Below are positions 18,630 through 62,434 of a stretch of DNA of 64,000 nucleotides, piece by piece. Source of the DNA: Macrostomum lignano (taxonomy: Eukaryota). The position numbers and the translations under genes were made by a program. The stretch lies in assembly GCA_002269645.1 (NCBI GenBank), contig NIVC01002334.1, forward strand, positions 1 through 64,000, in the 5' to 3' direction. The stretch's first letter is position 1, and each line of letters begins with the position of its first letter. The notes under the pieces were generated by a model. It was not told the DNA's origin, ran no database searches, and was given only the letters and a program-made list of their open reading frames with translations.

Positions 18630-21600
18630 ATGTCAAACCAGTCTAGTAAAAAAGAAATTCCTAACACTATCAAGTTTCTCTTTGGAGGCTCTGCAGGGTG
18701 AGTAAGCCTGAATAATTAATTTGAGGGTCTTAGCTTTTGGCTTAGCCTGAGCCCTGAGGCCAAAGGTATCAAACTCATTTTCATTCTGTAGTTTAAGTTT
18801 TTATTTTTTGCAATTTTACTCTAACACAGTTTAAAACAATTGATCAACTTGGATAGGCCCAGCATTCTCTATTTTATTTATAAAACTTGTAAAAGAATCA
18901 TGCCTCATGGTAGTAAATCATATATAGCTGGCTCTATTCAAAAGTATAAAGTTTCTTTGCTAGTTTGCCTTCCATATTGCTATATGTATGCCGGAAAGTA
19001 TCTGGCTATATAGTAAAGTGTACGCCAATAAAAATGCATGATTAACAAGCACAAAAACTATGAAAGAAGCATGCCAAGGCGCACATCAAAAATTACTGTA
19101 AAAAAGTAAAATTGAAAATGTACATCATTTAAAAAACAAAATAATTAGTAAAACAAAGTTTTTACATTTACTACTAGTTAAGGTACATTTTTTAAAAATA
19201 ACTTTAATATATTGTTTGAATATTCAATTTATTGTCATAACTTAGCGAAGTAACTTTATTGACTATTTAGCATAATTTACATAATGGTGTCGTACATCAA
19301 TGCTTTTGTATGCTGCGTTGAAAGCTTGAACAAGTATAGTTAAAAATTGTAAGCAGATAATTATGCTTGGAGGTTGTATTTCCTCCGGTTACGATAGATG
19401 TACGCCAGCCAAAGAATTTGTATGCCAGATGTAAGCCACTTAAAGCGTTTGTACGCCAGATGTACGCCAGCTAAAGCATTTGTACGCTGGAATTTTCCGG
19501 TGTATACTACACCTTCCGCAATATGGTTTACCTTGAGTTATTTTAGTGCTATAATGTATATTTGCAACTAAGGTCCAATTTTAAGATGCAATTTAGAAAG
19601 TCAAGATTTTTAATAGTATCCTTAATAATAATAGTAATATACATAGAAAAACTTGTACTTGTAGGCCTACAGGTTTTTTTGCTAGCATTAGGATTCAAAA
19701 TCAAATTCAGGTCTAATCAAGGACAATAGCATTTTAAAGTCAAAATGCTATTGTATTGTATCCCTATCTCAAAAAGTGAATACAATCCATTTCAATAATA
19801 GCCATTTTGGTAACTACCACTTCAATAACATAATGATGACTTTAGTCAAAAATCAGATTTACATTTGTTAACGCTATATCTTTATGGCAATTGACTTTAG
19901 CCACTTTTAGTTTATTAATTAATATGTCAAATATTGTATTGCTATATATAGTTTAATTTTCTAGTTAAACAATATTATAATTTATTTAAATGTATATATT
20001 AACTTTATAAAAAATATAAATCCTAGAAAAGAAATTGTATATTGTCATTAATTTTTGCAAACTTAAGCGTCCCTTTTTTGGGCGTCAATGTGGCAATTTG
20101 TGCCTTGAATTGTCTATGGTATTTTCTATTTCAGTAATAGAGCAAAATAGAACAACAGTATGAAACAGTGGCCAACAAATAAGAGTAGAAGTTTATGCAC
20201 TTATAAGCATGCAAAGAGAGACAATCAGTTAGTTAAATTAAATTAGTCTTTCAGGCTATAGAAATCAAACGTACAATTTCAAAATGTTCTAGAGAAATTC
20301 ACACTGACCGATGGAGCTGGCACAGCCTGCTTAACTTGTCCTTCAGCAAGACAATCTTTGCACGTAGCTACTGCTTCCTTTATCGACACCACACCAATAG
20401 GGCCCACATGTTTAATGCACACAGTCGATGCGCTGGCATCAACGCTCAGCGTCTCTGACATTGCTTGAAAGTTAGCGTCTCCTCATTCAAGAGTATTGTT
20501 CAACACTTTCCAGATTCTTATGACCGGTGCTGCTAGCAATCGCTGCATTCAAAAATCTATGCTCTTTCAAAACTGTGACGTGTGTTACACAAATGCAATG
20601 ATTCGTATAGTGTTTAGAGAGACCAAGATTTATTGACAATTGACTCATGAGTTGATCAATTATGTTCTTGCCCAGTGTACGGGAGACATAGTACCATCGC
20701 TTACTGGACATACCTTTCGAAACATTGACGCACGGCTTCGGAAAAAGTGATTCAATGTGTAGATCCGCTAGGCACTGTAGGTACATCTTCAAGGCAGCAA
20801 CAGGGCAATTCCAATTCTCAGAATCCAAATACATACAAGCTAGCTTTGCATCCTGGAACTCGGTCTTCTTTAGAGATGCCTTAGAATTCTTACTAAGAAG
20901 GTCATAGTTCAGAGTGGCATAGTCACGGCCTTCAGAACTCAGAATCCACTTGAAACACAAAACTCTCCCTCGTCAGTATTGGTAGGTTCTCCTGTCCACG
21001 CAGTCCAAAATAATAAATTAAATGGAACATGACCTCTTTATAGAGTATGTCACCACATGATCTGTCAAAGTAGCTCATGATCTTCTGGAGGTCACTTTTC
21101 TTGATCACAGCAAATCCATCTCGCGATTTTGGTTGATTGGCTAGCTTGTACATCTGATTCGCATTTGCGAAGGCCATGTCCGCAATAATGTTAATCTCTA
21201 GGCGACTGAGACAGAAGAAGCGATGCAGTCCGGCTCTAATGCAGATGAGACTTGCTAGAGCATAGTACTGCTCGTCCTTTGTTTGCAGTGTTAAATAGAA
21301 GAAATGCAAATAATTAGCCAGAATCAACTTTGGAATTCGCAGCAGATCTATTGACAGTTTCATTTTTTCCAGAAAAGTCTTGAAGCGGCTCACATTGTCC
21401 TCCATCTGCCAGGCAGAGGAGTCTGGTATTCCATCTCGTTCAAGCTGATTTAACTCTTGCATCACGTCCTCCAGAATGTCGAGAATCTCTTCTGATTCTA
21501 TCTTGTGCCCAAATTCTTTGCTCAGTTCCTCCAAATACTGGCTGTTTGACTCGGATAATATCCACGCCAGCTCTTTGGTCAACATACCGGAAACCATTTC

Positions 21601-24600
21601 TCCTGGCAGATTGGAATAATTAATTAAATGGTTGATCATTTTCAGAACTCAAGCACACCTTAGTCCTGACAGATTTGAAAAAATATATATTTAGCATTTT
21701 TCTAGCTCCTTCAGTTTTACTGTCCATCTCTAGACCTGGACCATCAAAACTTCGTCTATGACCAAGAGCTCGCAAATCAAAAGAAAGAATGGCCATAGAC
21801 ATTTCAACTGCATTCTATGTAATAACACAGAGCCTGGAATTTTTGACATTGATGCCCAGAAATTTCTTGCATTAATGACAATAATATAAACATTACTTTT
21901 TGTGGGTATCAATGTAGAATTTCTATATTAATGTTATATTAACATTATTAACATTATTGACATTAACATTATTGTAATATTAATGTTATATTAGATAAAT
22001 GAAACATTTAGGCTTTTCACAAAGATTGGTTCCTGAACTAGAATAATTCCAATTCCAGAACCAGAATCAGTAGGAAAATGAAAAGTGTCAAATTTTTCTA
22101 TTCTTTTATTACAAGCATATATTACTTCTTAAAATATAAAAACTTTTATCTAAAATATGGCCTATGCTTTTGAGTTCTTTGTATTTTTTTGAAATGTTTG
22201 AAATGTTATTTCAGAATTCAAAGTTGTCTTGTTCTTTCCATAGAAGTATAACAATTCATTTAGAAAAGTTTTTAAACCAAATTCTGATAATTGGATCATA
22301 GTTTTAGAACCAATTCTAAAAAATGGAACAGAAAATATTTAAAGCTTCAAAATGATTCTTGTTTTGAAATCAGTAATATAAAAAACCTATAATATTTTAG
22401 TTGAAGTTGAAGTAATCAATGAAGAAAAAAGTAGATATTGTTGTGAAAGGCCAGATTATAGCCTTAGTTAATCTAGTGGACAAGCACATGGATGATGTCA
22501 ATCAATTGGCTAGATTGACTTTAGACTCCATATGTGATCTCATCATGAGACTTGGTTAAACTGTCTATATGGCACAATTTGAACCCAGCCAGACCTGCAA
22601 TAAACAAGAGACACAACTCACTTTTTGACTTGACATAGCAGTGACAGTGGTAGCAATAAGAGTATACTCCAATTCTGACAGTGAATGCTTTTAAATATAT
22701 ACTGATTTTTGGTGAGTTACTGGCAATAGTATATAGAGTCTAGATTGGCACAAAGGATGGTCTCCTATACTGCCACATATGCCAACATATATATATTTTC
22801 ACTAGTTGGTTAAGCCTCGGGATATTGGTACCCCAGGCCCAGCTAACCAGAATTTCAAAATTCATAACTTACAGAACATGATAGGGTCATGATTAGAGAA
22901 AAATAGCAATTTAAGGGTGTGAAAGGTGTGATAGAGGGCACAGCCAGCCAAAGCCAGCTGGCCCAGACAGGGAGTGGGGTATATGGGGTGTACACAACTA
23001 TGTAAACAACTGAAGGGGGAAAAGTGTAATGATGGGTGCTCTGACTGCAAGCCCATTATGGCTAAGCACCAACACAACAATACTATAACTTCAAGTCACT
23101 AAATCAAGTATTCTAATATACTCAATATTTGGTCAATTATAAGATATTTCTACTACATGTATCTAATGCATCTAGAAATAAAGTATATTGGTTAAAGTTT
23201 TAAACTTTTAAATAAGTTGAACATATGTACAAGTATATACTAATTGTACAAGTATACCAATTTTTTCACTTGTTACAAAAGTGGTTGTTACTGAGTTGGT
23301 TGTTACTAAATTTGTCATCATTTGTTTTTGGAGTGGCTATTACCAAAGTAGACTATTACCAAAAAAGTTACCTAGTTCTTATGTAACTATAAATTGTATT
23401 TTTATACATACTTTTTTAAAGTATGCTTTAATTTGAATTTTAAGTTAAATAAAGAAAGATTAGCTATCTTTTGAAATTAGGAAAATTAAGTAATTATCTA
23501 TGTAGTAAAATATTAGCTTATTTGTCTTAGTTGGACTTAGTCAAGTGTTCTGATTATAGCAAATAAGCATTTTGGTAAATGGTATCTAGTGTGGAATAGT
23601 CTGGTAGGTGATAGTATGGTGTGGGAGTACGAGATCTGCTAGCCAAAGTTTGCTAGTGAAAAATTTGCTTGCCAAAATCTGTTAGCCGAAGTTTGCCAGC
23701 CAAAACTGCTAGCCGAAATCTGCTAGACAAAATCTGCTAGCCAAAGTTTGCTAGCCAAAATCTGCTAGCCAAAATCTGCTAGCCAAAATCTGCTAGCCAA
23801 AGTTTGCTAGCAAAGATTTTGCTAGCTGCCTTGCTCTTGTAGCTGTTGCATGTTATTTGCTATGTTTTGATTCTGATTTGAGCTGCTTTGATTTGTAGAA
23901 ATAAATATATAACTTATATACCATATACTGCCACTACCAGCCATTAAGACTAAAAGTTGTGTGTATAGATAAGTTTAAATTTAACTACCTGAACTATAGC
24001 TGCCTGAGCTACTTGAACTACAGCCTTACAGCTGATAATGCTAAAATATTATCAAATGTCTACGAGTAAAATAGAACAAAAAATTATAAATGATTTTGAC
24101 AATTTCCAAGTGCAGTTTTAGCATATACAGTACTTTAGCATACAATAACACACATGTTGGTGTATAGTATCTATAGCTAGATACATGTATGTCCAAGGTA
24201 CAATTTACTATAGCTATATGTATTGTTAATGTATAGATATTTTCCATCACTTATGGCACTCTGTACAAGCAAAAACTCTATGCAGGTATGGCCCACAAGC
24301 TCTTACCCTGTGATCATGGATGTAATATATTTACTTTATTCAATAGCTTGTATATGAACTTTTCAATCCACCTACATTAAAACCTAAATCTTATTTTCTT
24401 TTTGGCTATGACATTATCTACTGATTGCATTTTAACACGTACATGTACGAGAACCCACGGCAAAGGCTAGGTGGCAGATTAAATTGTCCAGATTAAGTCG
24501 TCCCCACAACAGTTTGCCTTTTTAATTTACTCTGACTACCAAGAGCGAGCAAACAAAACAACAGAGCCAACAAACTTGAAGAAAAGGTTTGATTCTTTAG

Positions 24601-27600
24601 ACCCATAATTAATTGTTTATGCTTACGTTCCAACCTAACTAGTCTTTGTAAAGGTAGTGATTTTTGAGGAGATGAAATGCCACGTTTAAAAAAATGAATA
24701 ACTAAACCAGGAAATTGGATCGCAATTAAATGATTTTTGAAACAAAACATTTTTATTATCAACTCGAACAATATTACCTTTATTATATCTTTTTTTATAA
24801 ACAGCAAAATGAGGCTTAACACTCTCAAAACAAATGCAGGTGGAAACTACGTAATGGCAATATTATTTTAATACGAGTATTATATAATACCCGTATATAG
24901 CAGCTGTTGCACTCCATTGCATATCATGAAAAAGTTGCTATTTGCTGGTTTTGGTTAGATTATCGCTGGCAGATTTCTGCTAGCAAGTCCTCGCTAGCAA
25001 GTCCTTGCTAGCAAATCCTCGCTAGCAAAATTCCTGCTAGCAAACTTCAGCTAGCAGATTTTGTCTAGCAGATTTCGGCTAGCACATTTTGGCTAGCAAA
25101 CTTTGGCTAGCAGATTTTGGCTAGCACATTTCAGCTAGCAAACTTTGGTTAGCAGATTTCGGCTAGCACATTTCGGCTAGCAAACTTCAGCTAGCAGATT
25201 TTGTCTAGCAGATTTCGGCTAGCACATTTTGGCTAGCAAACTTTGGCTAGCAGATTTTGGCTAGCACATTTCAGCTAGCAAACTTTGGTTAGCAGATTTC
25301 GGCTAGCACATTTCGGCTAGCAAACTTTGGCTAGCAGATTTCAGCAAGCAAATTTCTCGCTAGCAAACTTTGGCTAGCAGATTTCCTGCTAGCAAATTTC
25401 ATAGACCCATATGGTGTATTATAATGTTAGTATAGTGCTCTAGCATAGCATGGTTAGTATAAGGATCTTGCATATTCATGCCATACACTGCCATAAGGTC
25501 AAGTGTCTTCAATGATTGTACTTTTATTATTGCCATACTATCACTTATTGCCAATAAAAGTTAAAGTAGTGAGAATAAGACACCCAAATACCTCTGATGT
25601 TGCAGCTTTAGATATGGCTTTGACAAGACCACAAAATGATCATAATGGTTGCAAAGGTCTGTAATAGCCTATTTTGATATCTATTTGATACAATCAATTT
25701 GAATGAAAGTGCTAATGAAGTCATCAATTTAGCCCATAAGTGGATTCAGGATTTATATATTGATAACTTTTACTATTGCAAAGTTAATTATGCAACTCAA
25801 TTATATATTTGCTTTGCTTTTCTTGTGCCATATTAGGCTTTAACCATCGACAGAAACAAAGTGAAATTGCTTCATAAAAATCAATAAGGTGCAGCCATTG
25901 CCATTCACAATAAAAATTACATAGGTCCTTTTCTATATCAAGGTGATATAGATGTGCTCCAGATGCAAGTCAATGATTCTACAGCATTTCTACCATGACT
26001 CAGATAAAACTAGATAAAACTAGAAAGATTTAATACTTTCTAGACACTTCAAGGTTTAGTATAACTCTTTTACAAGAATATATCCTGTAAAAGAGATTGG
26101 CATACTCAAAAGTCACTCAAAAACCATTTATGAATTATGATCAATAGTACTGTATGAGCATAGTTGAGACAGCAGGGTCCATAGTTTACCATATAATGAG
26201 TAAGTTACATGAAATTAATTAGCTATGCTTACATATTCGGATATGGAAAATTTTCGGTTACAGTGAACATACGTGCGAAACAGTCGGCCGACCGATTTGG
26301 CGGCAAACCAAGGAAGTCGCAAAAATGCCCACCCGAAAAAATAACGTAGTAGTACTAAGTAGCTGACGAGGCATTTTGGCTTAATAAGACAGTTAAAGTT
26401 GCTCCAGCCGTTTACCCAAATTTGCTTTAGGGTTTTTTTACATCTAAGTCGCATTTTTGGCCAAAAACTACGTCGCATTTTTTTTAAAACTAAGTCGCAT
26501 GAATGACAGTGAAGATCGATGCAAAGAAAAGTTTGTTTATTGCATTAAAAATTTGTAGAATGGCGGCTACCCTGTTTGTTCAACCGTTGGATCTGGTGAA
26601 GAATCGAATGCAGCTCAGTGGTATGGGCGGCTCGCAGCGCCTCTATAACAGCTCTTTTCACGCTCTGACATCTATACTTCGAGCCGAGGGTATCACCGGG
26701 GTGTACTCCGGTCTGTCAGCTGGCCTGATGCGTCAGGCCACCTACACCACAACTAGACTTGGCGTCTATACTGCTCTATTCGATGCAGTTAGTGCTAGGA
26801 ATGATAATAAGCCACCATCCTTTGTTGTCAAGGCAACTATTGGGTTAACAGCCGGAGCAATTGGAGCTTTTGTTGGCACCCCGGCTGAGGTGGCTCTGAT
26901 CCGCATGACTGCCGATGGCAGACTGCCAGCTGATCAGAGACGCGGCTACAGCAGCGTGTTTAACGCTTTGGCTAGGATTGTACGCGAAGAAGGCTTAGTG
27001 ACCCTCTGGCGCGGCTGCGTGCCCACAGTTGCCAGGGCAATGGTGGTTAATGCTGCCCAGCTGGCCACCTATTCTCAGGCTAAGCAAACTATCATTAGCT
27101 CGGGTATTATTAGTGTGAGTTGCCTCTAGCCTGCTGTAGATTTGCGATGCTGGTTGTGACTTCCATTGTGACTTCCCCATTGTGACCCTCCCACTGTGAC
27201 TTCCATTGTGACTCTCTCAGTGTGACTCTCCCATTGTGACCCTCCCACTTTGATTCTCCCACTGTGACTCTCCCACAGTGGTTCTTCCATTGTGACTCTT
27301 TCACTGTGACCCCCCCCCCACTGTGACTACTCACATTGTGACCCTCCCACTGTGACTTCCATTGTGACTCTTTCACTGTGACTCCCCCACTGTGACTACT
27401 CACATTGTGACCCTCCCACTGTGACTTCCATTGTGACTCTCTCATTGTGACCCCCCCCCCACTGTGACTACTCACATTGTGACCCTCCCACTGTGACTTC
27501 CATTGTGACTCTCTCATTGTGACTCACATTGTGACTCTCCCACTGTGACTTCCCCATTGTGATTCCTCCATTGTGACTTCCCTTCTGTGACTGTCTCATT

Positions 27601-29762: not shown

Positions 29763-30095
29763 CAGGGGTCGGCAAACTTTTACCTTGATCGAGGGCCAAA
29801 TACAGACCGCTCGGGGTCTTTTGAAACTTCTTCACAATAGCAATCCGGCCCGCTCAATGTTTATCTCTTCTCTCTAATCTCAACTTTACTCTCTTTCTCT
29901 CTCCTCTCCCTTCTACTCTCTCCTTTTCTCTCCTCGTCTCCTCTCGTCTCTCCTCATTTATCTCCCCCTTCTATCTCCTGCGGGAGAGGAGGAGAGAAGA
30001 GTAGAGATGAAATAAGAGAGGAAAGAAAATTGAGCGGGCTGCTACTGTGGACGGTATCAATTAGGACCCGAGGGGCCGGAGTTTGCGGACCCCTG
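29763..30095. mobile_element. hAT/Charlie-like MITE just downstream of the SLC17 stop codon
   Basis: TIRs CAGGGGTCGGCAAAC / GTTTGCGGACCCCTG. Internal IR GCCCGCTCAAT...ATTGAGCGGGC around CT/GA-rich tracts. No matching TSD. Confidence 0.65.
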
Positions 30096-33100: not shown

Positions 33101-36100
33101 CATCCTTCAAGAGCAAGAGTTTAGTCTATGGTATAGAAAGCAGGGCTTCACCTCCACAACCCCAATCTGCGCCGTGAGTGCTCCATTTACTGAAACTTTA
33201 ATAATAGTTGGTAATAAATACCCGTACATTCCCCACTTTGTTTCAATGTTCTGTGGCCGCAAACGGTTGAGGACTCGTTTATTGTCCCACTCAAACTTAT
33301 ATCCACCGTTCATAGTTTTTGGCATGTCCGTTGATATGATGCATTATGACTAATAATGCTAACTTCCTGGCTACCTGACCCCTCCAGCTCCAATGGTATT
33401 ATCTGAACGATATAGGCTGAGAGTGCACAGGCAACTATGATGAGGGTGTTGTAACCCGGGGGAGCGCCACGGCTACGCCTCAAGGATAATCTGATTGACT
33501 GCTACATCCCGTCGGACATGCAGAGTGAGGCGAGCAGAGATGGAAGAAAGAGAAGCGAACAGGGAGGAGAGTGTGAGAGCCTGTTGAGACGGCGAGATTG
33601 TTGTGGAAAAAAACCTTGAAAAGGAGCAGCCGAGAGCTACGCTGAGCAAGCAAGGGGGGGGCTGCTGGGGGCGCAGGAAGATGGGAAACGTGATTATCGC
33701 CAGGGCATCCCAACAGAGAGCCCGGGGCCTCTCTTAAGCAGGAAGTCAAAGTCAGGCAGTGAGGAAAGACTTTCAAGCCTCTATGCTCTCAGTGTAAGAC
33801 TCGGGCATTGCGGTGCGTCCCCCCTATAGTAGGGGCAATGACGCTAAGAAAAGAAATGACGCACCAATTGAAGGGGATAACCTAGGAACAAAATTGCAAA
33901 TATGACACCTCTAAAGATATATCCGAGATATTAAGAGGCAACTATGACGCAATTAAAAAATCTTTCTACGCTACTGCAAGTAGAAATGATGATATATCCT
34001 TTCACATACCCAAATGAAAAAAGTTGAACAAAATTCCCTCCCAAAAAATATCTTCCACACAAAATATAGCAAAAAGCGAAAACTGGCTCAAAAAACTAAA
34101 AGCAAATTAATATGACTGAGTGTCATTCCTAAGCTCTCCATTTGATTCTATATATTGACAGCGCTAGTTAGAGATTCTGAGAGTAGTGGGCTCTGCGTCC
34201 TCTTTGCACCTGTGTATATCAGCCCCTTGAGTGTCATTTCTAAGCTCTCCATTTGATTCTATATATTGACAGTGCTAGTTAGAGATGCTGAGAGAAGCGG
34301 GCTCTGCGTCATCTTTGCACCTGTGTATATCAGCCCCATTGAGTGTCATTTCTAAGCTCTCCATTTGATTCTATATATTGACAGTGCAAGTTAGAGATGC
34401 TGAGAGAAGCGGGCTCTGCGTCATCTTTGCACCTGTGTATATCAGCCCCATTGAGTGTCATTTCTAAGCTCTCCATTTGATTCTATATATTGACAGCGCT
34501 AGTTAGAGATTCTGAGAGTAGCGGGCTCTGCGTCATCTTTGCACCTGTGTATATTAGCCCCATTGAGTGTCATTTCTAAGCTCTCCATTTGATTCTATAT
34601 ATTGACAGTGCTAGTTAGAGATGCTGAGAGAAGCGGGCTCTGCGTCATCTTTGCACCTGTGTATATCAGCCCTATTGAGTGTCATTTCTAAGCTCTTCAT
34701 TTGATTCTATATATTGACAGCGCTAGTTAGAGATTCTGAGAGAAGCGGGCTCTGCGTCATCTTTGCACCTGTGTATATCAGCCCCATTGAGTGTCATTTC
34801 TAAGCTCTCCATTTGATTCTATACATTGACAGCGCTAGTTAGAGATTCTGAGAGTAGCGGGCTCTGCGTCATCTTTGCACCTGTGTATATCAGCCCCATT
34901 GAGTGTCATTTCTAAGCTCTCCATTTAATTCTATATATTGACAGTGCAAGTTAGAGATGCTGAGAGAAGCGGGCTCTGCGTCATCTTTGCACCTGTGTAT
35001 ATCAGCCCCATTGAGTGTCATTTCTAAGCTCTCCATTTAATTCTATATATTGACAGCGCTAGTTAGAGATTCTGAGAGAAGCAGGCTCTGCGTCATCTTT
35101 GCACCTGTGTATATCAGCCCCATTGAGTGTCATTTCTAAGCTCTCCATTTGATTCTATATATTGACAGTGCAAGTTAGAGATGCTGAGAGAAGCGGGCTC
35201 TGCGTCATCTTTGCACCTGTGTATATCAGCCCCATTGAGTGTCATTTTTAAGCTCTCCATTTAATTCTATATATTGACAGCGCAAGTTAGAGATGCTGAG
35301 AGAAGCGGGCTCTGCGTCATCTTTGAACCTGTGTATATCAGCCCCATTGAGTGTCATTTTTAAGCTCTCCATTTAATTCTATATATTGACAGCGCTAGTT
35401 AGAGATGCTGAGAGAAGCGGACCACTCTGTTTGCGGCATTCGTTGTCGGGTAAAGTGCATTATGCATGTAATGTGTATTTTTGCATTTGCTGTCAGTATT
35501 TGACAAGCGTAATAATTTGCTAAGAATAGGAATTAGGAATGTTTTTAGGAGCGTAGAAACTGAAGAAAAAGGTATATTGAATCGCCCGTTTATATTGTTG
35601 TGTTTTAAGAAGCATTTAAATTTAGTGAAAGTTATTTTGTAAAATAGGTGTTTAATACATTAAAAAAATGATGAAGCCAAGGAAGCAATTTATTTCTTTG
35701 TTATGTTTTTCCCAAGTCGTAGTATAGTAGATGCATAAGCATTTATGAGGCATAAGCAAAGGCATAGGCATACGCATAGACATAAGCATACATGTATAAG
35801 CATTTATAAGGCATAAGCAAAGGCATAGGCATACGCATAGACATAAGCATACATGTATAAGCAGAAGCATAGATTAAATTTTTGATAACACAGTTTCCAG
35901 GCGGCAGTCACGTCCCAATTTGCTCACCTCTGCCATGCGTTGGTAAGCTTGGCAGAGCTGCTTTGAAGAGTTTTTCGGAGCCGCCTCTACTCCGCTGGCG
36001 AAGCGCCACTGGTGCAGCCACGCGCTAGTAGGTGGCTCGTCAAAAAATTGGACATGAATTTGTTTCGAGCAAAAGCCCTTGGTGCACTTTTTTCCGCGCC

Positions 36101-39100
36101 GGGGTAAGCAAACCATCGCAGGCCACCAGTTGTCTCCGTTTGTTGGCCAGTAGCCGAGAACCAGCGATCCCGGTTGAATTTTTTGACGCTTGACTGCACT
36201 ATTGGCCGGAGTTGGAGCTGCTGGTCGCTTTCTAGCCAGGCGATGGCCGGGGCCAGAGGCTGCGGCGTCGCCAACAGCGGCATCGGCAGTAGAGGCTGCG
36301 GCGTCGCCAGCAGCGGCATCGGAGGCTGCGGCGTCACCAGCAGCGGCATCGGCAGTGGAGGCTGCGGCGTCGCCAGCAGCGGCATCGGCAGCGGAGGCTG
36401 CGGCGTCGCCAGCAGCGGCATCGGCAGCGGAGGCTGCGGCGTCGCCAGCAGCGGCATCGGCAGTGGAGGCTGCGGCGTCGCCAGCAGCGGCATCGGCAGC
36501 GGAGGCTGCGGCGTCGCCAGCAGCGGCATCGGCAGCGGAGGCGGAGACAGCGGCGCCATCAAATTCGCTATCGCTGTTGCCGTACAGCTGGTTTACGATC
36601 CCATTGAAATCCTCCGAGTTAAACGATACGTCAAGCAGGACGGCGTCCGACAGGGCGGTGTCAAGCAGGACGGCGCCAGGCACGGTGTCGCTAGGCACAG
36701 CGGCGGCAGACACAGCGGCGCCAGGCGCGATGTCGCAAAACACAGCGGCGGCAGACACAGCGGCGCCAGGCACGGTGTCGCTAGGCACAGCGGCGGCAGA
36801 CACAGCGGCGCCAGGCGCGATGTCGTAAAACACAGCGGCGGCAGACACAGCGGCGCCAGGCACGGTGTCGCTAGGCACAGCGGCAGCAGACACAGCGGCG
36901 CCAGGCGCGATGTCGCAAAACACAGCGGCGGCAGACACAGCGGCGCCAGGCACGGTGTCGCTAGGCACAGCGGCGGCAGATACAGCGGCCCCAGCGGCAG
37001 GCAGGATGGGAGCAGTCGGCCGACGGGTCTTCTTTGCCGCCGATGTCGATGCCGCTGCTTTTTTTTGCCATCGGCACGGCGGAGGAGCCCTGGACCCATT
37101 CGCCGATGGGCCGGCAACCGACACGGAGTCCCTGTCAGCAGACGGCGGATTGTCCATCCTATGAAGAATGCTGTCCAGGTCGTAATCTAATAGAGGAAAG
37201 ATAGAAAGTAGCAAGTTTTTTAAGCAAATTCATTTAACGGGGAGAAAACAACTAGAACTGACTTTTTTATTGCTAATGTAAATATTTTAGGTCATTTCTG
37301 ACAAAATTAGTAAATTTCATTGCATTTATAGCGCCTTTTAATTGTACAGGTTATTCGCAAATTCTAATTTCCTCAAATGTTAGCAATCATGCTGTACTCA
37401 CTGTCGCTATCGATGCCGCCGGCGAGTTCGTTGGCCGCCCTCTGCAGCCGGCTGCCTTGAATTGGAGCTCTGGCGCTCAGGGTGTCGTCTTGCAGCGCTG
37501 TCGCACTCGACACCAATTTCTTTGTTAGTTCACGGCCCTTCTTCCGCCTCTCCTTGGTCTGGCCCTGTTTAGATTTTCAGACGGGATTGCAGATTTGATG
37601 GAGTCAGATGAGTAGAATGAATGAAAAATAATACAATATATACTCATAATTGTGTTTACTACATTCCTACATTGGTGTAAGGGCTCAAATGCGCAGCTTT
37701 AATGACTGAACTATGTTATATGCATCTATTTAGTGTATTGAATTTAGTTTTTATTCAGAACTTTTTATTAACTCACAAAAGGTGCAACTGCTTTATAAAT
37801 ATTAAAATAAGTTTGAATTAGTTGCTAAGGAATCCTATTTTACACTTAAAATATGATTTTTGTCGTTTCAGAAGTCTTCAGTGACAATTATTTAGCAAAT
37901 TTAGCGATTTTACCTGGTAAAATTGGCGCTGCACACCTTCGGTGTGATTTTGGTGGTCAGCCATGAGCCGCTGTTCCTCCGCAGAGCAGTTTGACAGGCC
38001 CATAACCTCCAACCATTGCCGAAACTTGGAAACCGTGACGTTTTTGAGCAGCGGAGAATACCTTTCTCGGTACTGGTAAAACAGTCGGTCAAATGACCCG
38101 TAGGGAAACACGAGCGCTAGGTCATCGTCCTTTGGACGCTCAGCAAAGCGCTGGGCCAGCAGCTGCATGAGCAGGTCGGCGCAGGGCGCGACGCTGGCCC
38201 AGGCCGACCCATGCTTTGCGTTCGACTTGTGGCTCTGCACCTTCAGCGGCTCGTTAGGTGCTTTGAGCCAGCGCCGGGCGTCCGAGATAAGGCAAGTCGA
38301 GGCCACGCCTTGCCGGTTGGCATTACCATCGCCAAAGCAGATGACCATGCCAACGGCCAGGAATGTCACCGTCCTGTGCGGATGGAATTAGAGGTATTTA
38401 TTTATTTATAGGTAATTTTCTAAGCTGTCTCAGATTTCTGTAATTTCTGAGCTAATAAAATTTTCAATGCCATTCTGAATACCAGTGCCATATTGAATAC
38501 CAGCTAGCGCCATATTTATCCCAGTGCCATTTTGAATTCCAGCGCCATATTGAATACCAGCTAGCGCCATATTTATCCCAGTGCCATTTTGAATTCCAGC
38601 GCCATATTGAATACCAGCTAGCGCCATATTTATCCCAGTGCTATTTTGAATACAGTGCCATATTTATCCCAGCGCCATTTTTAATGCCAGTGTCATATTA
38701 AGCCCCATCAAACTTTTATACCTCGGCATAAAAAGCATTGGGAAAAAATTTAACTCACCTGTCCTTGGTTGATCGCGCTTCTGCCAGCACAGCGTCTTTC
38801 ATCTCAAAGACGGCTTTAATCTGCTCGCCTGTGAGCAATTCTTCTTCTCGGCGGTCAATAAGCTTCGCATAATATTCGGCCTTCGGCCCCATTGAACTTG
38901 CAGTCCAATTTTTTGTGGACTGCCTGTACGAGGTCAGCTGTTGTTGCATCCCACCGTCTACAATCTGCTGGAAACGGCGGGTAATTAAAAAATTACCCAC
39001 TTTCTCAAGCGCGGACACCGTTTGTTTTAGAATGGAGTAGGACAAACTGTCCAGATATTCGCTAATTCTATCGCGCATATCTTCGCTGATCAGCTGATTA

Positions 39101-42100
39101 AAGCTCATGATATCTAGACGCTGCATCAGCCGTTTGAGGTAGCAGCGGATCTCGCGGACCGTAGCCGGCTTTTTTCGTCCGCCTAAAGAGCTTGCCAGGA
39201 AGACGCAGAGTGCTTCCACGTCAACTGTCGATGGGTGCTCAGCCACTGCTGCTCTGGCTGGCACTTTGGCCCTGGCTTCGATAAGTTTCTGCTCTTTCTC
39301 GGCTCGAACTACGCTAGGGTGGCTATTTCGCTTGTGGCTGCTGAGCTGATTTGCGTTGTTCTTCCATTCGCCGCAGACTGCACACTGCAGTGCCGTCTCG
39401 GGCATCGGGCCGGCAGTTCTTTCGTGAGTATGCAGCTTAACTGCAGCTCGCAGCGCTTGCAGAGCTTTTCTCTGCAGAGCATCTGCTGGGACCTGTTCAG
39501 TTGCTGCTAGCTTTTCTTTCGTGCTTTCTAGCACAGCTGAATGAGCCCTTTTGATGTGCTCACTAAATCTGGATTGTTTAATTGGCATGCAGTTGCCAAA
39601 CGGGCAGATATACTCTTGCCCGGCCCGCGTTTTCTTTGGCTCCTGGGCGTTGGCGGGCTGCTGGGTGCTGGCGGGCTGCTGGGTGCTGGCGGGCTGCTGG
39701 GTGCTGGCGGGCTGCTGGGTGCTGGCGGGCTGCTGAGTGCTGGCCGGCTGCTGGGTGCTGGCGGGCTGCTGGGTGCTGGCGGTCTTCTGGGTGCTGGCGG
39801 GCTGCTGAGTGCTGGCGGGCTGCTGGGTGCTGGCGGTCTTCTGGGTGCTGGCGGGCTGCTGAGTGCTGGCCGGCTGCTGGGTGCTGGCGGGCTGCTGGGT
39901 GCTGGCGGGCTGCTGAGTGCTGGCGGGCTGCTGGGTGCTGGCGGGCTGCTGGGTGCTGGCGGGCTGCTGAGTGCTGGCGGGCTGCTGGGTGCTGGCGGGC
40001 TGCTGGGTGCTGGCGGGCTGCTGGGTGCTGGCGGGCTGCTGAGTGCTGGCTGGCTGCTGGGTGCTGGCGGGCTGCTGGGTGCTGGCGGTCTTCTGGGTGC
40101 TGGCGGGCTGCTGAGTGCTGGCGGGCTGCTGGGTGCTGGCGGTCTTCTGGGTGCTGGCGGGCTGCTGAATGGACGACTTTGTCCATTTTTCCCATTGCAA
40201 CAGTTTTTCAATAAATGTCTTATTCATTGCGATTGAATTGAATTGAATAGCAATTGAAGGTATGATGCGAAATAGAAATTCGAGAATTAGATTATATATG
40301 CGAGAAAAAATATGCATATGCTCAAAAATGGGGATGAAGTCAGTCGTCAACAAATCAAAGGGAAGATGAAATTTCATTGGTTGCAATCTTGACTCAACTT
40401 TGGTGACTAATTAAAGTTTACCATTTTACATATTTGGAACTGCTTGACACGATTCTTTACAATAATGGCGCAATCATAAGTTTGGTGCAACAAATTTGCT
40501 TAGATAGGTGTCTTCCACCATGAACCACCTATCACTTTCACTGAGCATTGCGCAATCTTGAGCATACTCAGAGCACGTATTTGCTTTTGAACAATCGTGA
40601 AAACTGCGATTCTTATCTTTACTCAAACTCCAGCTATGGTGGAAAGATCGGGAAAAGCGCGAATCACACCACCAAACACACCGCTGTGCATAATACAAAA
40701 CAATATATAGATAAAAAGTGGAACTCTCACAGCGGGAGACCAAACCAAAAGTGAAAGCAAAGCTAAATTGTATTTTAGAAAGAGCCTTACTAAAGAAGCT
40801 GGTGAAATAATTCTGAGCTAAACTGTCAGTCATCAAGTATCAATAAAATGTACGAGCACCGTATATTCAAACGTCGATTTAAACTATGGCAGCACTGTCA
40901 ATATATAGAATTAAATGGAGAGCTTAGAAATGACACTCAATGGGGCTGATATACACAGGTGCAAAGATGACGCAGAGCCCGCTTCTCTCAGCATCTCTAA
41001 CTTGCACTGTCAATATATAGAATTAAATGGAGAGCTTAGAAATGACACTCAATGGGGCTGATATACACAGGTGCAAAGATGACGCGGAGCCTGCTTCTCT
41101 CAGCATCTCTAACTAGCGCTGTCAATATATAGAATTAAATGGAGAGCTTAGAAATGACACCCAATGGGGCTGATATACACAGGTGCAAAGATGACGCGGA
41201 GCCCGCTTCTCTCAGCATCTCTAACTTGCACTGTCAATATATAGAATTAAATGGAGAGCTTAGAAATGACACTCAATGGGGCTGATATACACAGGTGCAA
41301 AGATGACGCAGAGCCTGCTTCTCTCAGCATCTCTAACTAGCGCTGTCAATATATAGAATTAAATGGAGAGCTTAGAAATGACACCCAATGGGGCTGATAT
41401 ACACAGGTGCAAAGATGACGCAGAGCCCGCTTCTCTCAGAATCTCTAACTAGCGCTGTCAATATATAGAATTAAATGGAGAGCTTAGAAATGACACTCAA
41501 TGGGGCTGATATACACAGGTGCAAAGATGACGCAGAGCCCGCTTCTCTCAGCATCTCTAACTAGCGCTGTCAATATATAGAATTAAATGGAGAGCTTAGA
41601 AATGACACTCAATGGGGCTGATATACACAGGTGCAAAGATGACGCAGAGCCCGCTTCTCTCAGAATCTCTAACCAGCGCTGTCAATATATAGAATCAAAT
41701 GGAGAGCTTAGAAATGACACTCAATGGGGCTGATATACACAGGTGCAAAGATGACGCGGAGCCCGCTTCTCTCAGCATCTCTAACTAGCGCTGTCAATAT
41801 ATAGAATCAAATGGAGAGCTTAGAAATGACACTCAATGGGGCTGATATACACAGGTGCAAAGATGACGCAGAGCCCGCTTCTCTCAGAATCTCTAACTAG
41901 CGCTGTCAATATATAGAATCAAATGGAGAGCTTAGAAATGACACTCAATGGGGCTGATATACACAGGTGCAAAGATGACGCAGAGCCCGCTTCTCTCAGC
42001 ATCTCTAACTTGCACTGTCAATATATAGAATCAAATGGAGAGCTTAGAAATGACACTCAATGGGGCTGATATACACAGGTGCAAAGATGACGCAGAGCCC

Positions 42101-45100
42101 GCTTCTCTCAGCATCTCTAACTAGCACTGTCAATATATAGAATTAAATGGAGAGCTTAGAAATGACACTCAATGGGGCTGATATACACAGGTGCAAAGAT
42201 GACGCAGAGCCCGCTACTCTCAGAATCTCTAACTAGCACTGTCAATATATAGAATTAAATGGAGAGCTTAGAAATGACACTCAATGGGGCTGATATACAC
42301 AGGTGCAAAGATGACGCAGAGCCCACTTCTCTCAGCATCTCTAACTAGCACTGTCAATATATAGAATTAAATAGAGAGCTTAGAAATGACACTCAATGGG
42401 GCTGATATACACAGGTGCAAAGATGACGCAGAGCCCGCTTCTCTCAGCATCTCTAACTAGCACTGTCAATATATAGAATTAAATGGAGAGCTTAGAAATG
42501 ACACTCAATGGGGCTGATATACACAGGTGCAAAGATGACGCAGAGCCCGCTTCTCTCAGCATCTCTAACTAGCACTGTCAATATATAGAATTAAATGGAG
42601 AGCTTAGAAATGACACTAAATGGGGCTGATATACACAGGTGCAAAAATGACGCAGAGCCTGCTTCTCTCAGCATCTCTAACTTGCACTGTCAATATATAG
42701 AATTAAATGGAGAGCTTAGAAATGACACTCAATGGGGCTGATATACACAGGTGCAAAGATGACGCAGAGCCCGCTTCTCTCAGAATCTCTAACTAGCGCT
42801 GTCAATATATAGAATCAAATGGAGAGCTTAGAAATGACACTCAATGGGGCTGATATACACAGGTGCAAAGATGACGCAGAGCCCGCTTCTCTCAGAATCT
42901 CTAACTAGCACTGTCAATATATAGAATCAAATGGAGAGCTTAGAAATGACACTAAATGGGGCTGATATACACAGGTGCAAAGATGACGCAGAGCCTGCTT
43001 CTCTCAGCATCTCTAACTTGCACTGTCAATATATAGAATTAAATGGAGAGCTTAGAAATGACACTAAATGGGGCTGATATACACAGGTGCAAAGATGACG
43101 CAGAGCCTGCTTCTCTCAGCATCTCTAACTTGCACTGTCAATATATAGAATTAAATGGAGAGCTTAGAAATGACACCCAATGGGGCTGATATACACAGGT
43201 GCAAAGATGACGCAGAGCCCGCTTCTCTCAGAATCTCTAACTAGCGCTGTCAATATATAGAATTAAATGGAGAGCTTAGAAATGACACTCAATGGGGCTG
43301 ATATACACAGGTGCAAAGATGACGCAGAGCCCGCTTCTCTCAGAATCTCTAACTAGCACTGTCAATATATAGAATCAAATGGAGAGCTTAGAAATGACAC
43401 TCAATGGGGCTGATATACACAGGTGCAAAGATGACGCGGAGCCCGCTTCTCTCAGCATCTCTAACTAGCGCTGTCAATATATAGAATCAAATGGAGAGCT
43501 TAGAAATGACACTCAATGGGGCTGATATACACAGGTGCAAAGATGACGCAGAGCCCGCTTCTCTCAGAATCTCTAACTAGCGCTGTCAATATATAGAATC
43601 AAATGGAGAGCTTAGAAATGACACTCAATGGGGCTGATATAAACAGGTGCAAAGATGACGCAGAGCCCGCTTCTCTCAGCATCTCTAACTTGCACTGTGA
43701 ATATATAGAATTAAATGGAGAGCTTAGAAATGACACTCAATGGGGCTGATATACACAGGTGCAAAGATGACGCAGAGCCCGCTTCTCTCAGCATCTCTAA
43801 CTAGCACTGTCAATATATAGAATTAAATGGAGAGCTTAGAAATGACACTCAATGGGGCTGATATACACAGGTGCAAAGATGACGCAGAGCCTGCTTCTCT
43901 CAGCATCTCTAACTAGCGCTGTCAATATATAGAATTAAATGGAGAGCTTAGAAATGACACCCAATGGGGCTGATATACACAGGTGCAAAGATGACGCAGA
44001 GCCCGCTTCTCTCAGAATCTCTAACTAGCGCTGTCAATATATAGAATTAAATGGAGAGCTTAGAAATGACACTCAATGGGGCTGATATACACAGGTGCAA
44101 AGATGACGCAGAGCCCGCTTCTCTCAGCATCTCTAACTAGCGCTGTCAATATATAGAATTAAATGGAGAGCTTAGAAATGACACTCAATGGGGCTGATAT
44201 ACACAGGTGCAAAGATGACGCAGAGCCCGCTTCTCTCAGAATCTCTAACCAGCGCTGTCAATATATAGAATCAAATGGAGAGCTTAGAAATGACACTCAA
44301 TGGGGCTGATATACACAGGTGCAAAGATGACGCAGAGCCCGCTTCTCTCAGCATCTCTAACTAGCGCTGTCAATATATAGAATCAAATGGAGAGCTTAGA
44401 AATGACACTCAATGGGGCTGATATACACAGGTGCAAAGATGACGCAGAGCCCGCTTCTCTCAGAATCTCTAACTAGCGCTGTCAATATATAGAATCAAAT
44501 GGAGAGCTTAGAAATGACACTCAATGGGGCTGATATACACAGGTGCAAAGATGACGCAGAGCCCGCTTCTCTCAGCATCTCTAACTTGCACTGTCAATAT
44601 ATAGAATCAAATGGAGAGCTTAGAAATGACACTCAATGGGGCTGATATACACAGGTGCAAAGATGACGCAGAGCCCGCTTCTCTCAGCATCTCTAACTAG
44701 CACTGTCAATATATAGAATTAAATGGAGAGCTTAGAAATGACACTCAATGGGGCTGATATACACAGGTGCAAAGATGACGCAGAGCCCGCTACTCTCAGC
44801 ATCTCTAACTAGCGCTGTCAATATATAGAATTAAATGGAGAGCTTAGAAATGACACTCAATGGGGCTGATATACACAGGTGCAAAGATGACGCAGAGCCC
44901 ACTTCTCTCAGCATCTCTAACTAGCACTGTCAATACATAGACTTAAATGGAGAGCTTAGAAATGACACTCAATGGGGCTGATATACACAGGTGCAAAGAT
45001 GACGCAGAGCCCGCTTCTCTCAGCATCTCTAACTAGCACTGTCAATATATAGAATTAAATGGAGAGCTTAGAAATGACACTCAATGGGGCTGATATACAC

Positions 45101-48100
45101 AGGTGCAAAGATGACGCAGAGCCCGCTTCTCTCAGCATCTCTAACTAGCACTGTCAATATATAGAATTAAATGGAGAGCTTAGAAATGACACTCAATGGG
45201 GCTGATATACACAGGTGCAAAGATGACGCAGAGCCCGCTTCTCTCAGCATCTCTAACTTGCACTGTCAATATATAGAATTAAATGGAGAGCTTAGAAATG
45301 ACACTCAATGGGGCTGATATACACAGGTGCAAAGATGACGCAGAGCCTGCTTCTCTCAGCATCTCTAACTAGCACTGTCAATATATAGAATTAAATGGAG
45401 AGCTTAGAAATGACACTCAATGGGGCCGATATACACAGGTGCAAAGATGACGCAGAGCCCGCTTCTCTCAGAATCTTTAACTAGCACTGTCAATATATAG
45501 ACTTAAATGGAGAGCTTAGAAATGACACTCAATGGGGCTGATATACACAGGTGCAAAGATGACGCAGAGCCCGCTTCTCTCAGCATCTCTAACTAGCACT
45601 GTCAATATATAGAATTAAATGGAGAGCTTAGAAATGACACTCAATGGGGCTGATATACACAGGTGCAAAGATGACGCAGAGCCCGCTTCTCTCAGCATCT
45701 CTAACTAGCACTGTCAATATATAGAATTAAATGGAGAGCTTAGAAATGACACTCAATGGGGCTGATATACACAGGTGCAAAGATGACACAGAGCCCGCTT
45801 CTCTCAGCATCTCTAACTTGCACTGTCAATATATAGAATTAAATGGAGAGCTTAGAAATGACACTCAATGGGGCTGATATACACAGGTGCAAAGATGACG
45901 CAGAGCCTGCTTCTCTCAGCATCTCTAACTTGCACTGTCAATATATAGAATTAAATGGAGAGCTTAGAAATGACACTCAATGGGGCCGATATACACAGGT
46001 GCAAAGATGACGCAGAGCCCGCTTCTCTCAGAATCTTTAACTAGCGCTGTCAATATATAGAATTAAATGGAGAGCTTAGAAATGACACCCAATGGGGCTG
46101 ATATACACAGGTGCAAAGATGACGCAGAGCCCGCTTCTCTCAGAATCTCTAACTAGCGCTGTCAATATATAGAATTAAATGGAGAGCTTAGAAATGACAC
46201 CCAATGGGGCTGATATACACAGGTGCAAATATTTTTATTTACATAGTTATTTGAATAACTATAACTTCAAATAGTTATTCGAAGGATTGTAGTTTTGTCT
46301 CTTGAAGTCAAATATGTCTTTGTTTTTCGCCTTAAAGTAGTATATCTGATTTCAGCTTAATTTTTGTTGGGATAGGGAAAATCTTGCGTTGTTTTATTGA
46401 TTTAAGTTTCGTCATTTTTTTGGGGTATATTTAGAATATATCCTCTTTTGGAACGTTAATTTTTTGCGCGTCATTTTTATTTTTTTATAGGATATATTCG
46501 ATTGTGTCATTTCTACATTTTGCGTCATCCAAACGCCCCTTTCCGACAATCTCCCGTGGAGCCCCCCCCCAGGGCAAATACGGAGCAAAATAGAGCATAA
46601 AAATGGCTTGACGCTTAAGTGGCCGGAACGCAGAGCTGAGGACGCGAGGCGAGATCGAATGTTGCTTCTCACCCAGTGAATGGAGCAAATTATATCCGTG
46701 AGATTATAAAAAAATTTCCCCCACGTTCCAGCTGAAATCCTTCCACGCTTGGGGTTTAATACAAGCCGAAATCTCTATCCTGCTCTCTCTCTTCTTCCCT
46801 TCGTCGCAACCGAATCCCATCTGGAGCCGGAAACTTCAAAGGGAAGCCGATCAAATATCCCCTATTGCTTTCGCAAGAGACGCTTGCGCCCTGCCGACAA
46901 TAGTCTAGCTGTGCAGTTTTATCCAGTTTACTTTGCACTGCAGAAACTCCCTCTCTAAATGAGACGAAATTAATTAGACTTGTTATTTGGATGTCTTTGA
47001 TATCAGATAGGTAGACAGATAGGAAATGAAGACAAGAAACTGCCACACGATATGGTGACTGTTAGTTGTGTTGCGTGGTTAGTGTCTCTTGAGTTTGACA
47101 AAAACAATTTTAAAGCTTTAATTAAAGAGAGGCCACCCGAAATGTGTCACAAATTTAGCCGTAACTTTTGAGGTAAGTGTCCAAAAGAGTTAAGATGTAG
47201 TCGTGTAGGAGCGAATAAGAGATGAAAATGTGCTGCTTTATACTTGGATTGGAATCAATGATACAGCATTGGCTTTTACGGTATGGGCCCAAGGACTACT
47301 CAAGTAACATATAACGGGTGTCCCAAAAAAAGGTAACACTTTGTGCGCTCACTGTGAGTGAGCAGTTAGGCCTATAGCACAGTAATTTAACAGGTCCACA
47401 GTAAACATTTGTAAGTTTTTCCCACAAACATTTGGTTGCGAAAAATTGCTCCAGAGGCGAGTTATTGAGCACAGAAGTGTACGCTAGCTTTTCTGCCAAG
47501 CTTTGCCATACACAGCTGCCATAGCCAATCTTTTGCTTTAAAAAATCTTAAGGAGCATAGACTCTGAGACGGTGTGTGGTCAAGTACCAGTTTATTTGAA
47601 AAATCGTTATTGATTTTTTGAGCTTGTAAGTGTACGCTAGCTTCTCTGATAAGCTTTGCCATAGACGGAGGCCATAGACAATCTTTTGCGTTAGAAAAAT
47701 GACAGAGACTCTGATACTGATCTAACGTTAAAATTTTTAAAAGTGAGCGCACAAAGTGTTACCTTTTTTTGGGACACCCGTTATATAGGACGCTACACTC
47801 GAAATCTATGGTATATGTTTTGCAGGCAACTTTTACCATAGATTTCGAGTGTTGCGTCCTTCTACTTAAGTTGCCCTTGTAATGGGCCCCAGAGTCACTA
47901 GCTACTAGCTACTTTCTGGACACTACTCATAGGTAGACAGATAGCCAGAGGACACTAAAACAGATTGGCACAGACAGACGGGCTACAGATGTCACAACTA
48001 CTAGCATGATCAGGTATACCGATAGACAGGCAGGCAAACGCACACAATAAAGTCTCTCACCTAGCGCTCCAGATAGCAGGATGGTTGCCCACACAGCGTC

Positions 48101-62098: not shown

Positions 62099-62434
62099 GT
62101 AAGTGAACTGTTGGATTTTTTTAATTAGATACATGCGTCAAGACCCAAGCAACTTCATCACATGGCAGCCAACATCTTGACTTTGTACGATTATATGGAA
62201 CTATAAGGAATGAAAAATAAAAAAAAATCGGTTGCTGAAAAGTTTTCCAGATTTCCATTGGATTCAGACAAACAGATTTTTTGGAAAAAAAACCCAATAT
62301 TTAACAAAGTTGACAAGAAACAGAGAGATTTTGAAAGTATGACAAACTTTCACAGGAAAATTCTGATAGTTTTCTGGTCTAAAATTGTGTTCAATGCGTG
62401 TATAGGCTATACAACAAGTGTCTACGAAAATTCA

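Follow-up and report, generated by a model that had tools for sequence, protein, structure and literature searches.

A predicted four-exon gene that probably encodes a transposon-type recombinase with its own PWWP module

We analysed a stretch of Macrostomum lignano DNA of 64,000 nucleotides (nt) (contig NIVC01002334.1, positions 1 to 64,000, assembly GCA_002269645.1), hereafter called the window, and found that its minus strand between positions 40227 and 35874 probably holds a four-exon gene for a DNA recombinase of the transposon type that has a PWWP module of its own, with both splicing and function being predicted. Joined together, the four exons would encode one protein of 1134 amino acids, with two zinc fingers, a tyrosine recombinase (YR) core and a C-terminal PWWP domain. 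We lean towards the reading that the gene supplies the recombinase of a Crypton-like DNA transposon, or of a very recent derivative of one, from an unclassified eukaryotic YR family.

The predicted gene and its domains

Rebuilding the exons from the window gave four minus-strand pieces totalling 3405 nt and a spliced frame of 1134 codons plus TAA, with no internal stops. A first-pass annotation made from the DNA letters had proposed a four-exon, stop-free frame of about 1134 residues, and the rebuilt junction peptides (..KD-R-TVTF, ..FYQ-GQTK and ..IDSD-N-YDL) are identical to those that it gave. It had also reported that exon 3 was missing as a piece of its own from the list of open reading frames (ORFs), which is correct, as only a TTG-started fragment (37373-37516) is listed there. 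The mechanical claim of the gene model is confirmed, because the rebuilt exons give GT-AG sites, matching phases and a stop-free frame. The features of the gene are as follows.

38759-40227, minus strand: exon 1, residues 1-489 plus 2 nt, with the QQPAST repeat, two zinc fingers and an N-terminal helical (core-binding-like) domain
39638-40167, minus strand: (QQPAST)n repeat, an in-frame 18-bp tandem repeat of 29.4 copies with 92% matches
39541-39612, minus strand: zinc finger 1, residues 206-229, atypical C-x4-C-x10-H-x4-H
39319-39390, minus strand: zinc finger 2, residues 280-303, canonical C-x2-C-x12-H-x4-H
38842-39225, minus strand: helical N-terminal domain, residues 335-462, upstream of the catalytic domain, with a predicted local distance difference test (pLDDT) score of mostly 84-92
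38374-38758, minus strand: intron 1, 385 nt, GT..AG
37914-38373, minus strand: exon 2, residues 490-643, catalytic core
38313-38315, 38226-38228, 38019-38021, 37944-37946 and 37917-37919, minus strand: verified catalytic codons for R510, K539, R608, H633 and Y642, respectively
37565-37913, minus strand: intron 2, 349 nt, GT..AG
37402-37564, minus strand: exon 3, 163 nt, residues 644-697 plus 1 nt, post-catalytic helix and linker
37187-37401, minus strand: intron 3, 215 nt, GT..AG, strong pyrimidine tract
35874-37186, minus strand: exon 4, residues 698-1134 plus TAA, a low-complexity linker with in-frame repeats and then the PWWP
36671-36994 (90/45-bp) and 36256-36542 (36-bp), minus strand: in-frame repeats of exon 4
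35877-36173, minus strand: PWWP domain, residues 1036-1134, motif NWWP
35689-35694, minus strand: AATAAA, ~180 nt past the stop codon, a possible polyadenylation signal

All three introns are GT-AG with phases that match, and their donors read AG/GTGAGT, AG/GTAAAA and AG/GTGAGT and their acceptors CAG/G, CAG/G and TAG/A, respectively, the third being preceded by a strong pyrimidine tract. The exon 1-2 join is backed by independent homology, as the alignment with five intronless or single-exon relatives runs colinearly through the junction and unspliced exon 1 ends in KDR and a stop. Likewise, the exon 2-3 join has modest support from a helix that lies right after the catalytic Tyr both in the relatives and in the AlphaFold model. 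Exon 3 changes the phase from 0 to 1, the +1 shift required for the PWWP frame, and skipping it would lead to a frame that closes at 36593 without the PWWP. Read-through of intron 2 would end the protein 12 codons past the Tyr box, and retention of intron 3 would likewise give a short natural end. The ORF containing exon 1 spans 38755-40386 and the start codon is uncertain, because an in-frame ATG is also present upstream at 40376. The periods of the coding repeats are 18, 36 and 45/90 bp, and none of the indels in these repeats disrupts the frame. Tandem repeats also occur outside the coding sequence, with a 57-bp repeat of 3.5 copies inside intron 1 (38468-38664) and a non-coding 61-bp repeat of 2.2 copies directly after the stop codon (35731-35863), and short tandem or direct repeats stand beside the ORF at two loci of relatives as well (L003 and L004).

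The C-terminal PWWP domain named by the first-pass annotation was recovered by profile and sequence searches. Pfam PF00855 (gathering cut-off 25.6 bits) scored 28.2 bits on the C-terminal 126 residues and 25.9 bits on the full protein, and phmmer against PDB sequences matched the PWWP domains of MSH6 (E 6.6e-6), NSD3 (5.7e-5) and NSD2 (1.3e-4), in alignments that begin at GSLVLGYW and pass through NWWPAMV. These three domains were the best matches, aligning strands through the FF(D/G) strand and sharing the WWP motif, W1052 and F1078. Unlike that of MSH6, the window PWWP would stand on a recombinase, has Asp1049 in place of a Tyr, and has a β1-β2 loop that is two residues longer. On these sequence comparisons we consider the domain to be real, with methyl-lysine reading not guaranteed: of the three cage positions D1049, W1052 and F1078, as aligned to MSH6 and NSD3, two are aromatic, and the cage alignment is uncertain because the loop at D1049 is two residues longer than in either protein. 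The domain is encoded 3′ of the recombinase on the same strand, in a frame that can be reached through two canonical introns.

Both zinc fingers that had been noted earlier are present in exon 1. In finger 1 the second Cys is a His in the relatives and both His residues are invariant across the family, and Pfam matches of the fingers to zf-Di19 and zf-C2H2 were weak and below cut-off. Finger 2 has the C2H2 pattern and fold (C-x2-4-C-x12-H-x3-5-H, β-β-α), as its ligands C77, C80, H93 and H98 (alignment A2 numbering) are invariant and it is modelled as a β-hairpin and helix, with Foldseek matching it locally to fingers of CTCF and BCL11A at a probability of ~0.69.

Residues R510, K539, R608, H633 and Y642 are invariant across a six-member family of relatives, as are the motifs GNAxR, HK..G, xxxR..E, H and Y. 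Their spacing in the window protein, 29/69/25/9, appears close to that of XerD (24/75/23/9) and Cre (R-K 28, R-W 23, W-Y 9). The catalytic set had been given as R-K-(H)-R-H/W-Y, in which R, K, R, H and Y stand and the bracketed His does not; the set is better written R-K-(S/T)-R-H-Y, because Ser or Thr stands where the HxxR box would have its His. AlphaFold without an alignment gave a pLDDT of only 37 for residues 333-663, and an AlphaFold2 model built from a six-sequence alignment only gave a mean pLDDT of 76.2, with the Lys placed on a β-hairpin and the Tyr on a helix. Using Foldseek against BFVD, which holds viral predicted structures, the best matches of this model were tyrosine integrases (6 of the top 10 so named, 3 more unnamed), with probabilities of 0.84-1.00 (top five 1.00), E values of 3.9e-3 to 1.3e-2 at probability 1.00 and none below 1e-3, and a target-normalised template-modelling score of up to 0.54 over 315 columns. 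At rank 13 this list has baculovirus VLF-1, and the helical N-terminal domain falls within the stretch matched to whole phage integrases. The fold check proposed in the first-pass annotation was thus answered by phage tyrosine integrases, although not by a curated hidden Markov model (HMM) or a solved YR structure. We regard the YR assignment of the middle region as well supported, drawing on motif and predicted fold and not on sequence statistics.

A family of recombinases and a mobile M. lignano element

Using phmmer with exon 2 against 1.84 billion representatives we obtained six matches (E 2.5e-13 to 9e-4), and the family consists of an M. lignano hypothetical protein (PAA91811.1 / PAA87763.1, Mlig028483) and ORFs from metagenomes and read assemblies (P0001-P0004), with two of the metagenome relatives deriving from one sample. 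Every full-length member combines two fingers with a helical N-terminal domain and a catalytic domain, in the same order as in the window protein. The M. lignano protein and P0001-P0004 thus share with the window gene the atypical finger, the C2H2 finger, the helical N-terminal domain and a catalytic domain with GNAxR, HK, xxxR..E, H and Y. Unlike the window gene they have no PWWP and a core unsplit by introns, being intronless or having the core inside one exon, and they terminate 25-190 residues beyond the catalytic Tyr. Word-indexed homologue searches returned nothing with the 505-residue middle of the protein and P0001 only with profile A2, exact look-ups of the spliced protein, of the exon 1 ORF and of two host-gene ORFs gave no match, and neither did metagenome locus scans with the window protein or a three-member alignment. 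Whatever the status of the PWWP, these proteins define a rare, unclassified recombinase family with two zinc fingers and a YR core that has (S/T)xxR in place of HxxR.

Pairwise megablast revealed that the M. lignano relative is carried by a repeated unit, with three copies in assembly GCA_002269645.1 at loci L002 (8481-16903), L005 (7692-15640) and L006 (4399-11902). The copies are at least 99% identical and have identical sharp ends with no similarity beyond them, and their contexts are unrelated (near a Miff gene, inside a UQ_con gene and inside a TRAM_LAG1 gene, respectively). The unit is 7.5-8.4 kb, with a length that follows the count of internal 445-bp repeats, and its single large ORF is the recombinase relative. 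There is no terminal inverted repeat, long terminal repeat or terminal direct repeat in the unit, whose termini are 5′ CCATACTTTCC.. and 3′ ..GGAAAAGCC, and it is flanked by direct repeats of 4-7 bp with a CCAT core (CCAT, CCCAT, GCCCCAT).

The published Crypton signature is a YR only, no terminal inverted repeats, direct repeats of 4-6 bp (microhomology with the target) and a low copy number (PMC3212892, PMC13465315). Because the M. lignano unit fits this signature, the family behaves as a Crypton-like transposon, and the unit itself looks like an undescribed, apparently recently active one. The label 'Crypton-like' used in the first-pass annotation is supported in that the closest named relative is mobile with Crypton-type ends; the profile comparison of the family with CryptonA/DUF3504 was negative. 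The M. lignano element is also like the window gene in having in-frame tandem repeats in its linkers and a similar 5′ edge motif. Unlike the window copy it has no inverted satellite flanks, and mobility is shown for the M. lignano element only.

The annotated M. lignano protein is 5′-partial, and its ORF continues upstream to MAHRHKTRVLVYWQDQTEGECHYVFKEDL..SWIGCVGK (L002, ~9870-10120) as a β-rich segment of ~65 residues. A reader-like β domain at this true N-terminus (MAHRHKTRVLVYWQD..SWIGCVGK) was considered as a candidate and dropped, with no support found in Pfam or PDB.

The unique segment and the rival explanations

The whole gene lies in a unique segment between two arrays of one satellite.

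35421-40890, no strand assigned: unique segment, 5470 bp, containing the whole gene
40875-40889, minus strand: edge motif CCATAGTTTAAATCG, at the extreme 5′ edge of the unique segment
34117-35420, no strand assigned: left satellite array, 112-bp satellite, 11.7 copies, inverted relative to the right array
40891-46229, no strand assigned: right satellite array, 112-bp satellite, 47.7 copies

No other sizeable non-repeat ORF and no reverse transcriptase or DDE ORF was found in the unique segment, and both it and the M. lignano unit have a YR without reverse transcriptase, as Cryptons do. In gene orientation the segment opens with G followed by CCATAGTTTAAATCG, which is similar to the 5′ terminus of the M. 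lignano element, CCATACTTTCCAAATCG, the two sharing the pattern CCATA(C/G)TTT..AAATCG. When the first 20 nt were shuffled 20000 times, the score of this edge motif was reached only 7 times, which is suggestive of 40889/40890 being a true element end. The 3′ end of the window segment is unlike that of the M. lignano element, the short metagenome contigs lack CCATA[CG]TTT upstream of their genes, and no short flanking direct repeat was found around the window copy, which abuts the inverted satellite arrays and has undefined ends.

The satellite arms are 96-98% complementary and both directly abut the unique segment. The arrangement is not that of a simple insertion into an array. At their inner ends the two arrays are 24 nt out of phase, and no phase is shared between the outer ends; a foldback-like structure, a subsequent inversion or chance could account for the arrangement. 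Each satellite monomer (at 34333 and then every 112 bp, in both arrays) contains AGCCCCATTG, which is the predicted circle junction of the M. lignano element (AGCC^CCAT) and one of its target sites (gcc^ccattg). The satellite GCCCCAT site was also considered as the cause of the array boundaries, and was rejected as the inner and outer breakpoints are not consistently there.

If the gene does belong to a Crypton-like transposon or a very recent derivative, the recombinase would excise the element as a circle and then re-insert it by site-specific recombination at a short core, where Y642 would cleave and rejoin the DNA. The zinc fingers and N-terminal domain may bind the ends of the element, for which the CCATAGTTTAAATCG edge motif is a candidate site, and the PWWP, on its long flexible repeat linker, could hold the enzyme at a methyl-lysine mark or at nucleosomal DNA, thereby biasing recombination or the target site. 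Only tentatively would we go further and propose a transposon that is active and uses its built-in PWWP reader to choose insertion sites, as a member of a new superfamily of zinc-finger YRs that still moves in flatworms.

Several findings speak against this reading of the gene. The exon model is a prediction from DNA letters, and its exon 3-4 join is weakly constrained, being based on phase, splice signals and frame only, as the ~330 codons from the exon 4 acceptor to the PWWP are GC-rich tandem repeats with several frames open. The PWWP is seen in none of the five full-length relatives, at which point the correspondence of domain order between the window protein and its homologues ends, and the fusion has been seen once, because all five are without it. 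In the PWWP itself, Asp1049 aligns with the Tyr of the 'GYPWWP' of MSH6 and NSD3, so that the first cage aromatic would be missing. The His of the HxxR box is Ser in the window protein and Thr in most relatives; loss of this first His is tolerated in some active recombinases and type IB topoisomerases. Identity to the relatives is 21-25% over the aligned region and 23-34% in exon 2. Neither the window protein nor any relative matched Pfam Phage_integrase (PF00589) or DUF3504 (PF12012), PDB profile searches with alignments A2 and A5 returned just zinc fingers and noise (La protein) and no YR, and Foldseek of the whole model against PDB gave nothing significant and no YR, with local zinc-finger matches only. 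Likewise, hhalign against a 21-sequence CryptonA/DUF3504 alignment gave a probability of <1% in both local and global mode, in a comparison that, of the Crypton groups F, S, A and I, covered CryptonA/DUF3504 and that used proteins collected with the window's own degenerate CryptonA-like ORF at 20487-21639; the family and CryptonA share a mere motif-level echo (TNTxxR versus TNHxxR). Finally, there is no second copy of the gene within the 64-kb window, and three introns together with inverted satellite flanks are atypical for described animal Cryptons.

Some of these points raise the question of whether the fusion is an artefact of the gene model, with the recombinase stopping after exon 2 or 3 and the PWWP belonging to a separate product (MDNPP...) or to another gene of the unit, or surviving as a decaying fragment. 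The relatives, which end 25-190 residues past the Tyr and have no PWWP, would agree with this, as would the short natural ends given by read-through of intron 2 or 3, an in-frame ATG (MDNPP..) 11 codons into exon 4, repeat tracts open in several frames and the 31 other single-intron in-frame routes that lead from exon 2 to the PWWP frame. However, the acceptors of those routes are all poorer and that of intron 3 is the best in the region, consensus donors are present in three of three introns, and the 163-nt exon 3 gives exactly the +1 phase shift required. Furthermore, the PWWP frame alone is open over the full 1.3 kb, the periods and indels of the coding repeats are all multiples of three, and the PWWP lies on the same strand inside the same unique segment; we consider an artefact doubtful. 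A domesticated host gene is unlikely too, in our view: here a captured Crypton-derived recombinase would have gained introns and a PWWP exon and become an immobile, chromatin-bound DNA-binding or recombination factor. A single copy in the window, three introns against the intronless or single-exon cores of the relatives and long, host-like low-complexity linkers fit such a history, which has a precedent in the Crypton-derived ZMYM2/3/4, QRICH1, KCTD1 and KIAA1958, fused to other domains (PMC3212892). These domesticated DUF3504 genes, and WOC, are like the window gene in being multi-exon and in combining a YR-derived domain with other nuclear domains, but they come from a different recombinase lineage and have lost the catalytic Tyr and Arg (PMC3212892), whereas the window protein keeps all five family-conserved catalytic residues. 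Moreover, no orthologue was found among the 1.84 billion representatives, the distribution is patchy, the M. lignano relative is demonstrably mobile, and the edge motif resembles the terminus of that element.

A larger unit, in which the satellite arrays are the arms and the gene the loop of a foldback-type element, or in which the recombinase would flip the segment between inverted sites in the manner of FLP on the yeast 2-micron plasmid, is partly compatible with a Crypton-like transposon and seems to us very unlikely. A YR occurs together with inverted repeats in ciliate Tec elements and on the 2-micron plasmid, and the arms of Drosophila FB elements are unequal and consist of tandem repeats. 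In parallel with these, the window segment is abutted by unequal inverted arrays (1.3 and 5.3 kb) that are 96-98% complementary, with a satellite monomer holding the same AGCCCCATTG as the circle junction and one target of the M. lignano element. However, neither of the inner ends, 24 nt out of phase, is at a CCAT site, the outer ends are without a shared phase or target duplication, and the M. lignano relative has no inverted arms. This is also a single instance, for which a local inversion or a satellite fold-back duplication around an inserted element would be equally possible.

Relation to known systems and other features of the window

The window family is like Cryptons (Goodwin et al. 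2003; Kojima & Jurka 2011, PMC3212892) in its YR-only coding unit without reverse transcriptase, and the M. lignano relative shares their lack of terminal inverted or long direct repeats, the short direct repeats at the ends (4-7 bp) and the low copy number. It is unlike them in having no detectable sequence or profile similarity to CryptonA/DUF3504, and in its (S/T)xxR for HxxR. The accessory domains of Cryptons differ by group (GCR1_C, C48 peptidase, helix-turn-helix, DDE transposase), and a PWWP or other histone reader is absent from those reported (PMC3212892, PMC13465315). No pairing of a Crypton with a PWWP was found in the searchable literature, and the co-mentions of tyrosine recombinase and PWWP that were checked, in passage or by title, were unrelated. 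The first-pass annotation had known of no described YR-PWWP element, and we found none either among the full-length relatives, in the literature or among the reported Crypton accessory domains. What would be new here is the accessory domain, the PWWP, on a Crypton-like element whose recombinase family is unclassified.

Chromatin-guided insertion is well documented for DDE integrases, via chromodomains, LEDGF and BET proteins. In the chromodomain integrases of chromoviruses, Ty3/Gypsy and Tf1, and with LEDGF/p75, the integrase is coupled to a Royal-family reader that biases insertion (reviewed in PMC4176367). By analogy, the window gene would link the recombination enzyme of a mobile element to a Royal-family chromatin reader, with this function being predicted. 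Unlike the window protein, chromodomain and lentiviral integrases are DDE enzymes and not YRs, and the PWWP of LEDGF is on a host cofactor; the window cage is also incomplete. We found no report in the literature of chromatin-guided insertion for tyrosine-recombinase elements, and for Crypton transposition there is only a tentative model, made by analogy with prokaryotic elements (PMC3212892, PMC13465315).

If the more tentative reading, of an active transposon that chooses its sites through the PWWP, is true, the element would be the first of the cut-and-paste type among DNA elements, and its enzyme the first natural tyrosine recombinase, to have an intrinsic histone or nucleosome reader. A recombinase joined covalently to a PWWP would amount to a natural experiment on how chromatin can target site-specific recombination, and would also serve as a template for recombinase tools directed by chromatin. 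Transgenesis is established in the flatworm M. lignano. The M. lignano element, with three near-identical copies and exact ends, would make Crypton-type excision and integration directly testable.

Elsewhere in the window, a second and unrelated YR relic is present at 20487-21639 (minus strand), where a CryptonA/DUF3504-like ORF pair is split by a frameshift and has its HxxR box degraded to HCIC. This relic is 36-52% identical to many proteins of ~450 residues that are encoded on ~2-kb metagenome contigs and contain PF00589 and PF12012. A non-LTR (long terminal repeat) retrotransposon fragment at 7878-9610 (plus strand) encodes an endonuclease (PF14529) and a reverse transcriptase (PF00078) in ORFs whose frames are shifted. 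Host gene exons were identified for an amiloride-sensitive (ASIC-type) sodium channel (PF00858; 4298-5164, minus strand), a mitochondrial carrier (PF00153; 26503-27129, plus strand) and a major facilitator superfamily (MFS) transporter (PF07690; 50696-51967, minus strand). Interspersed repeats at 5631-5829, 62435-62616, 26314-26478 and 29814-29935 match M. lignano locus L002 with 69-74% nucleotide identity. Arrays of a ~21-bp repeat (ACTCATTTTAGCGCCGCAGGC) at 5815-5934 and 62418-63215 adjoin a conserved sequence of ~150 bp, which recurs in L002 at 21184-21372 and probably represents a shared repeat family.

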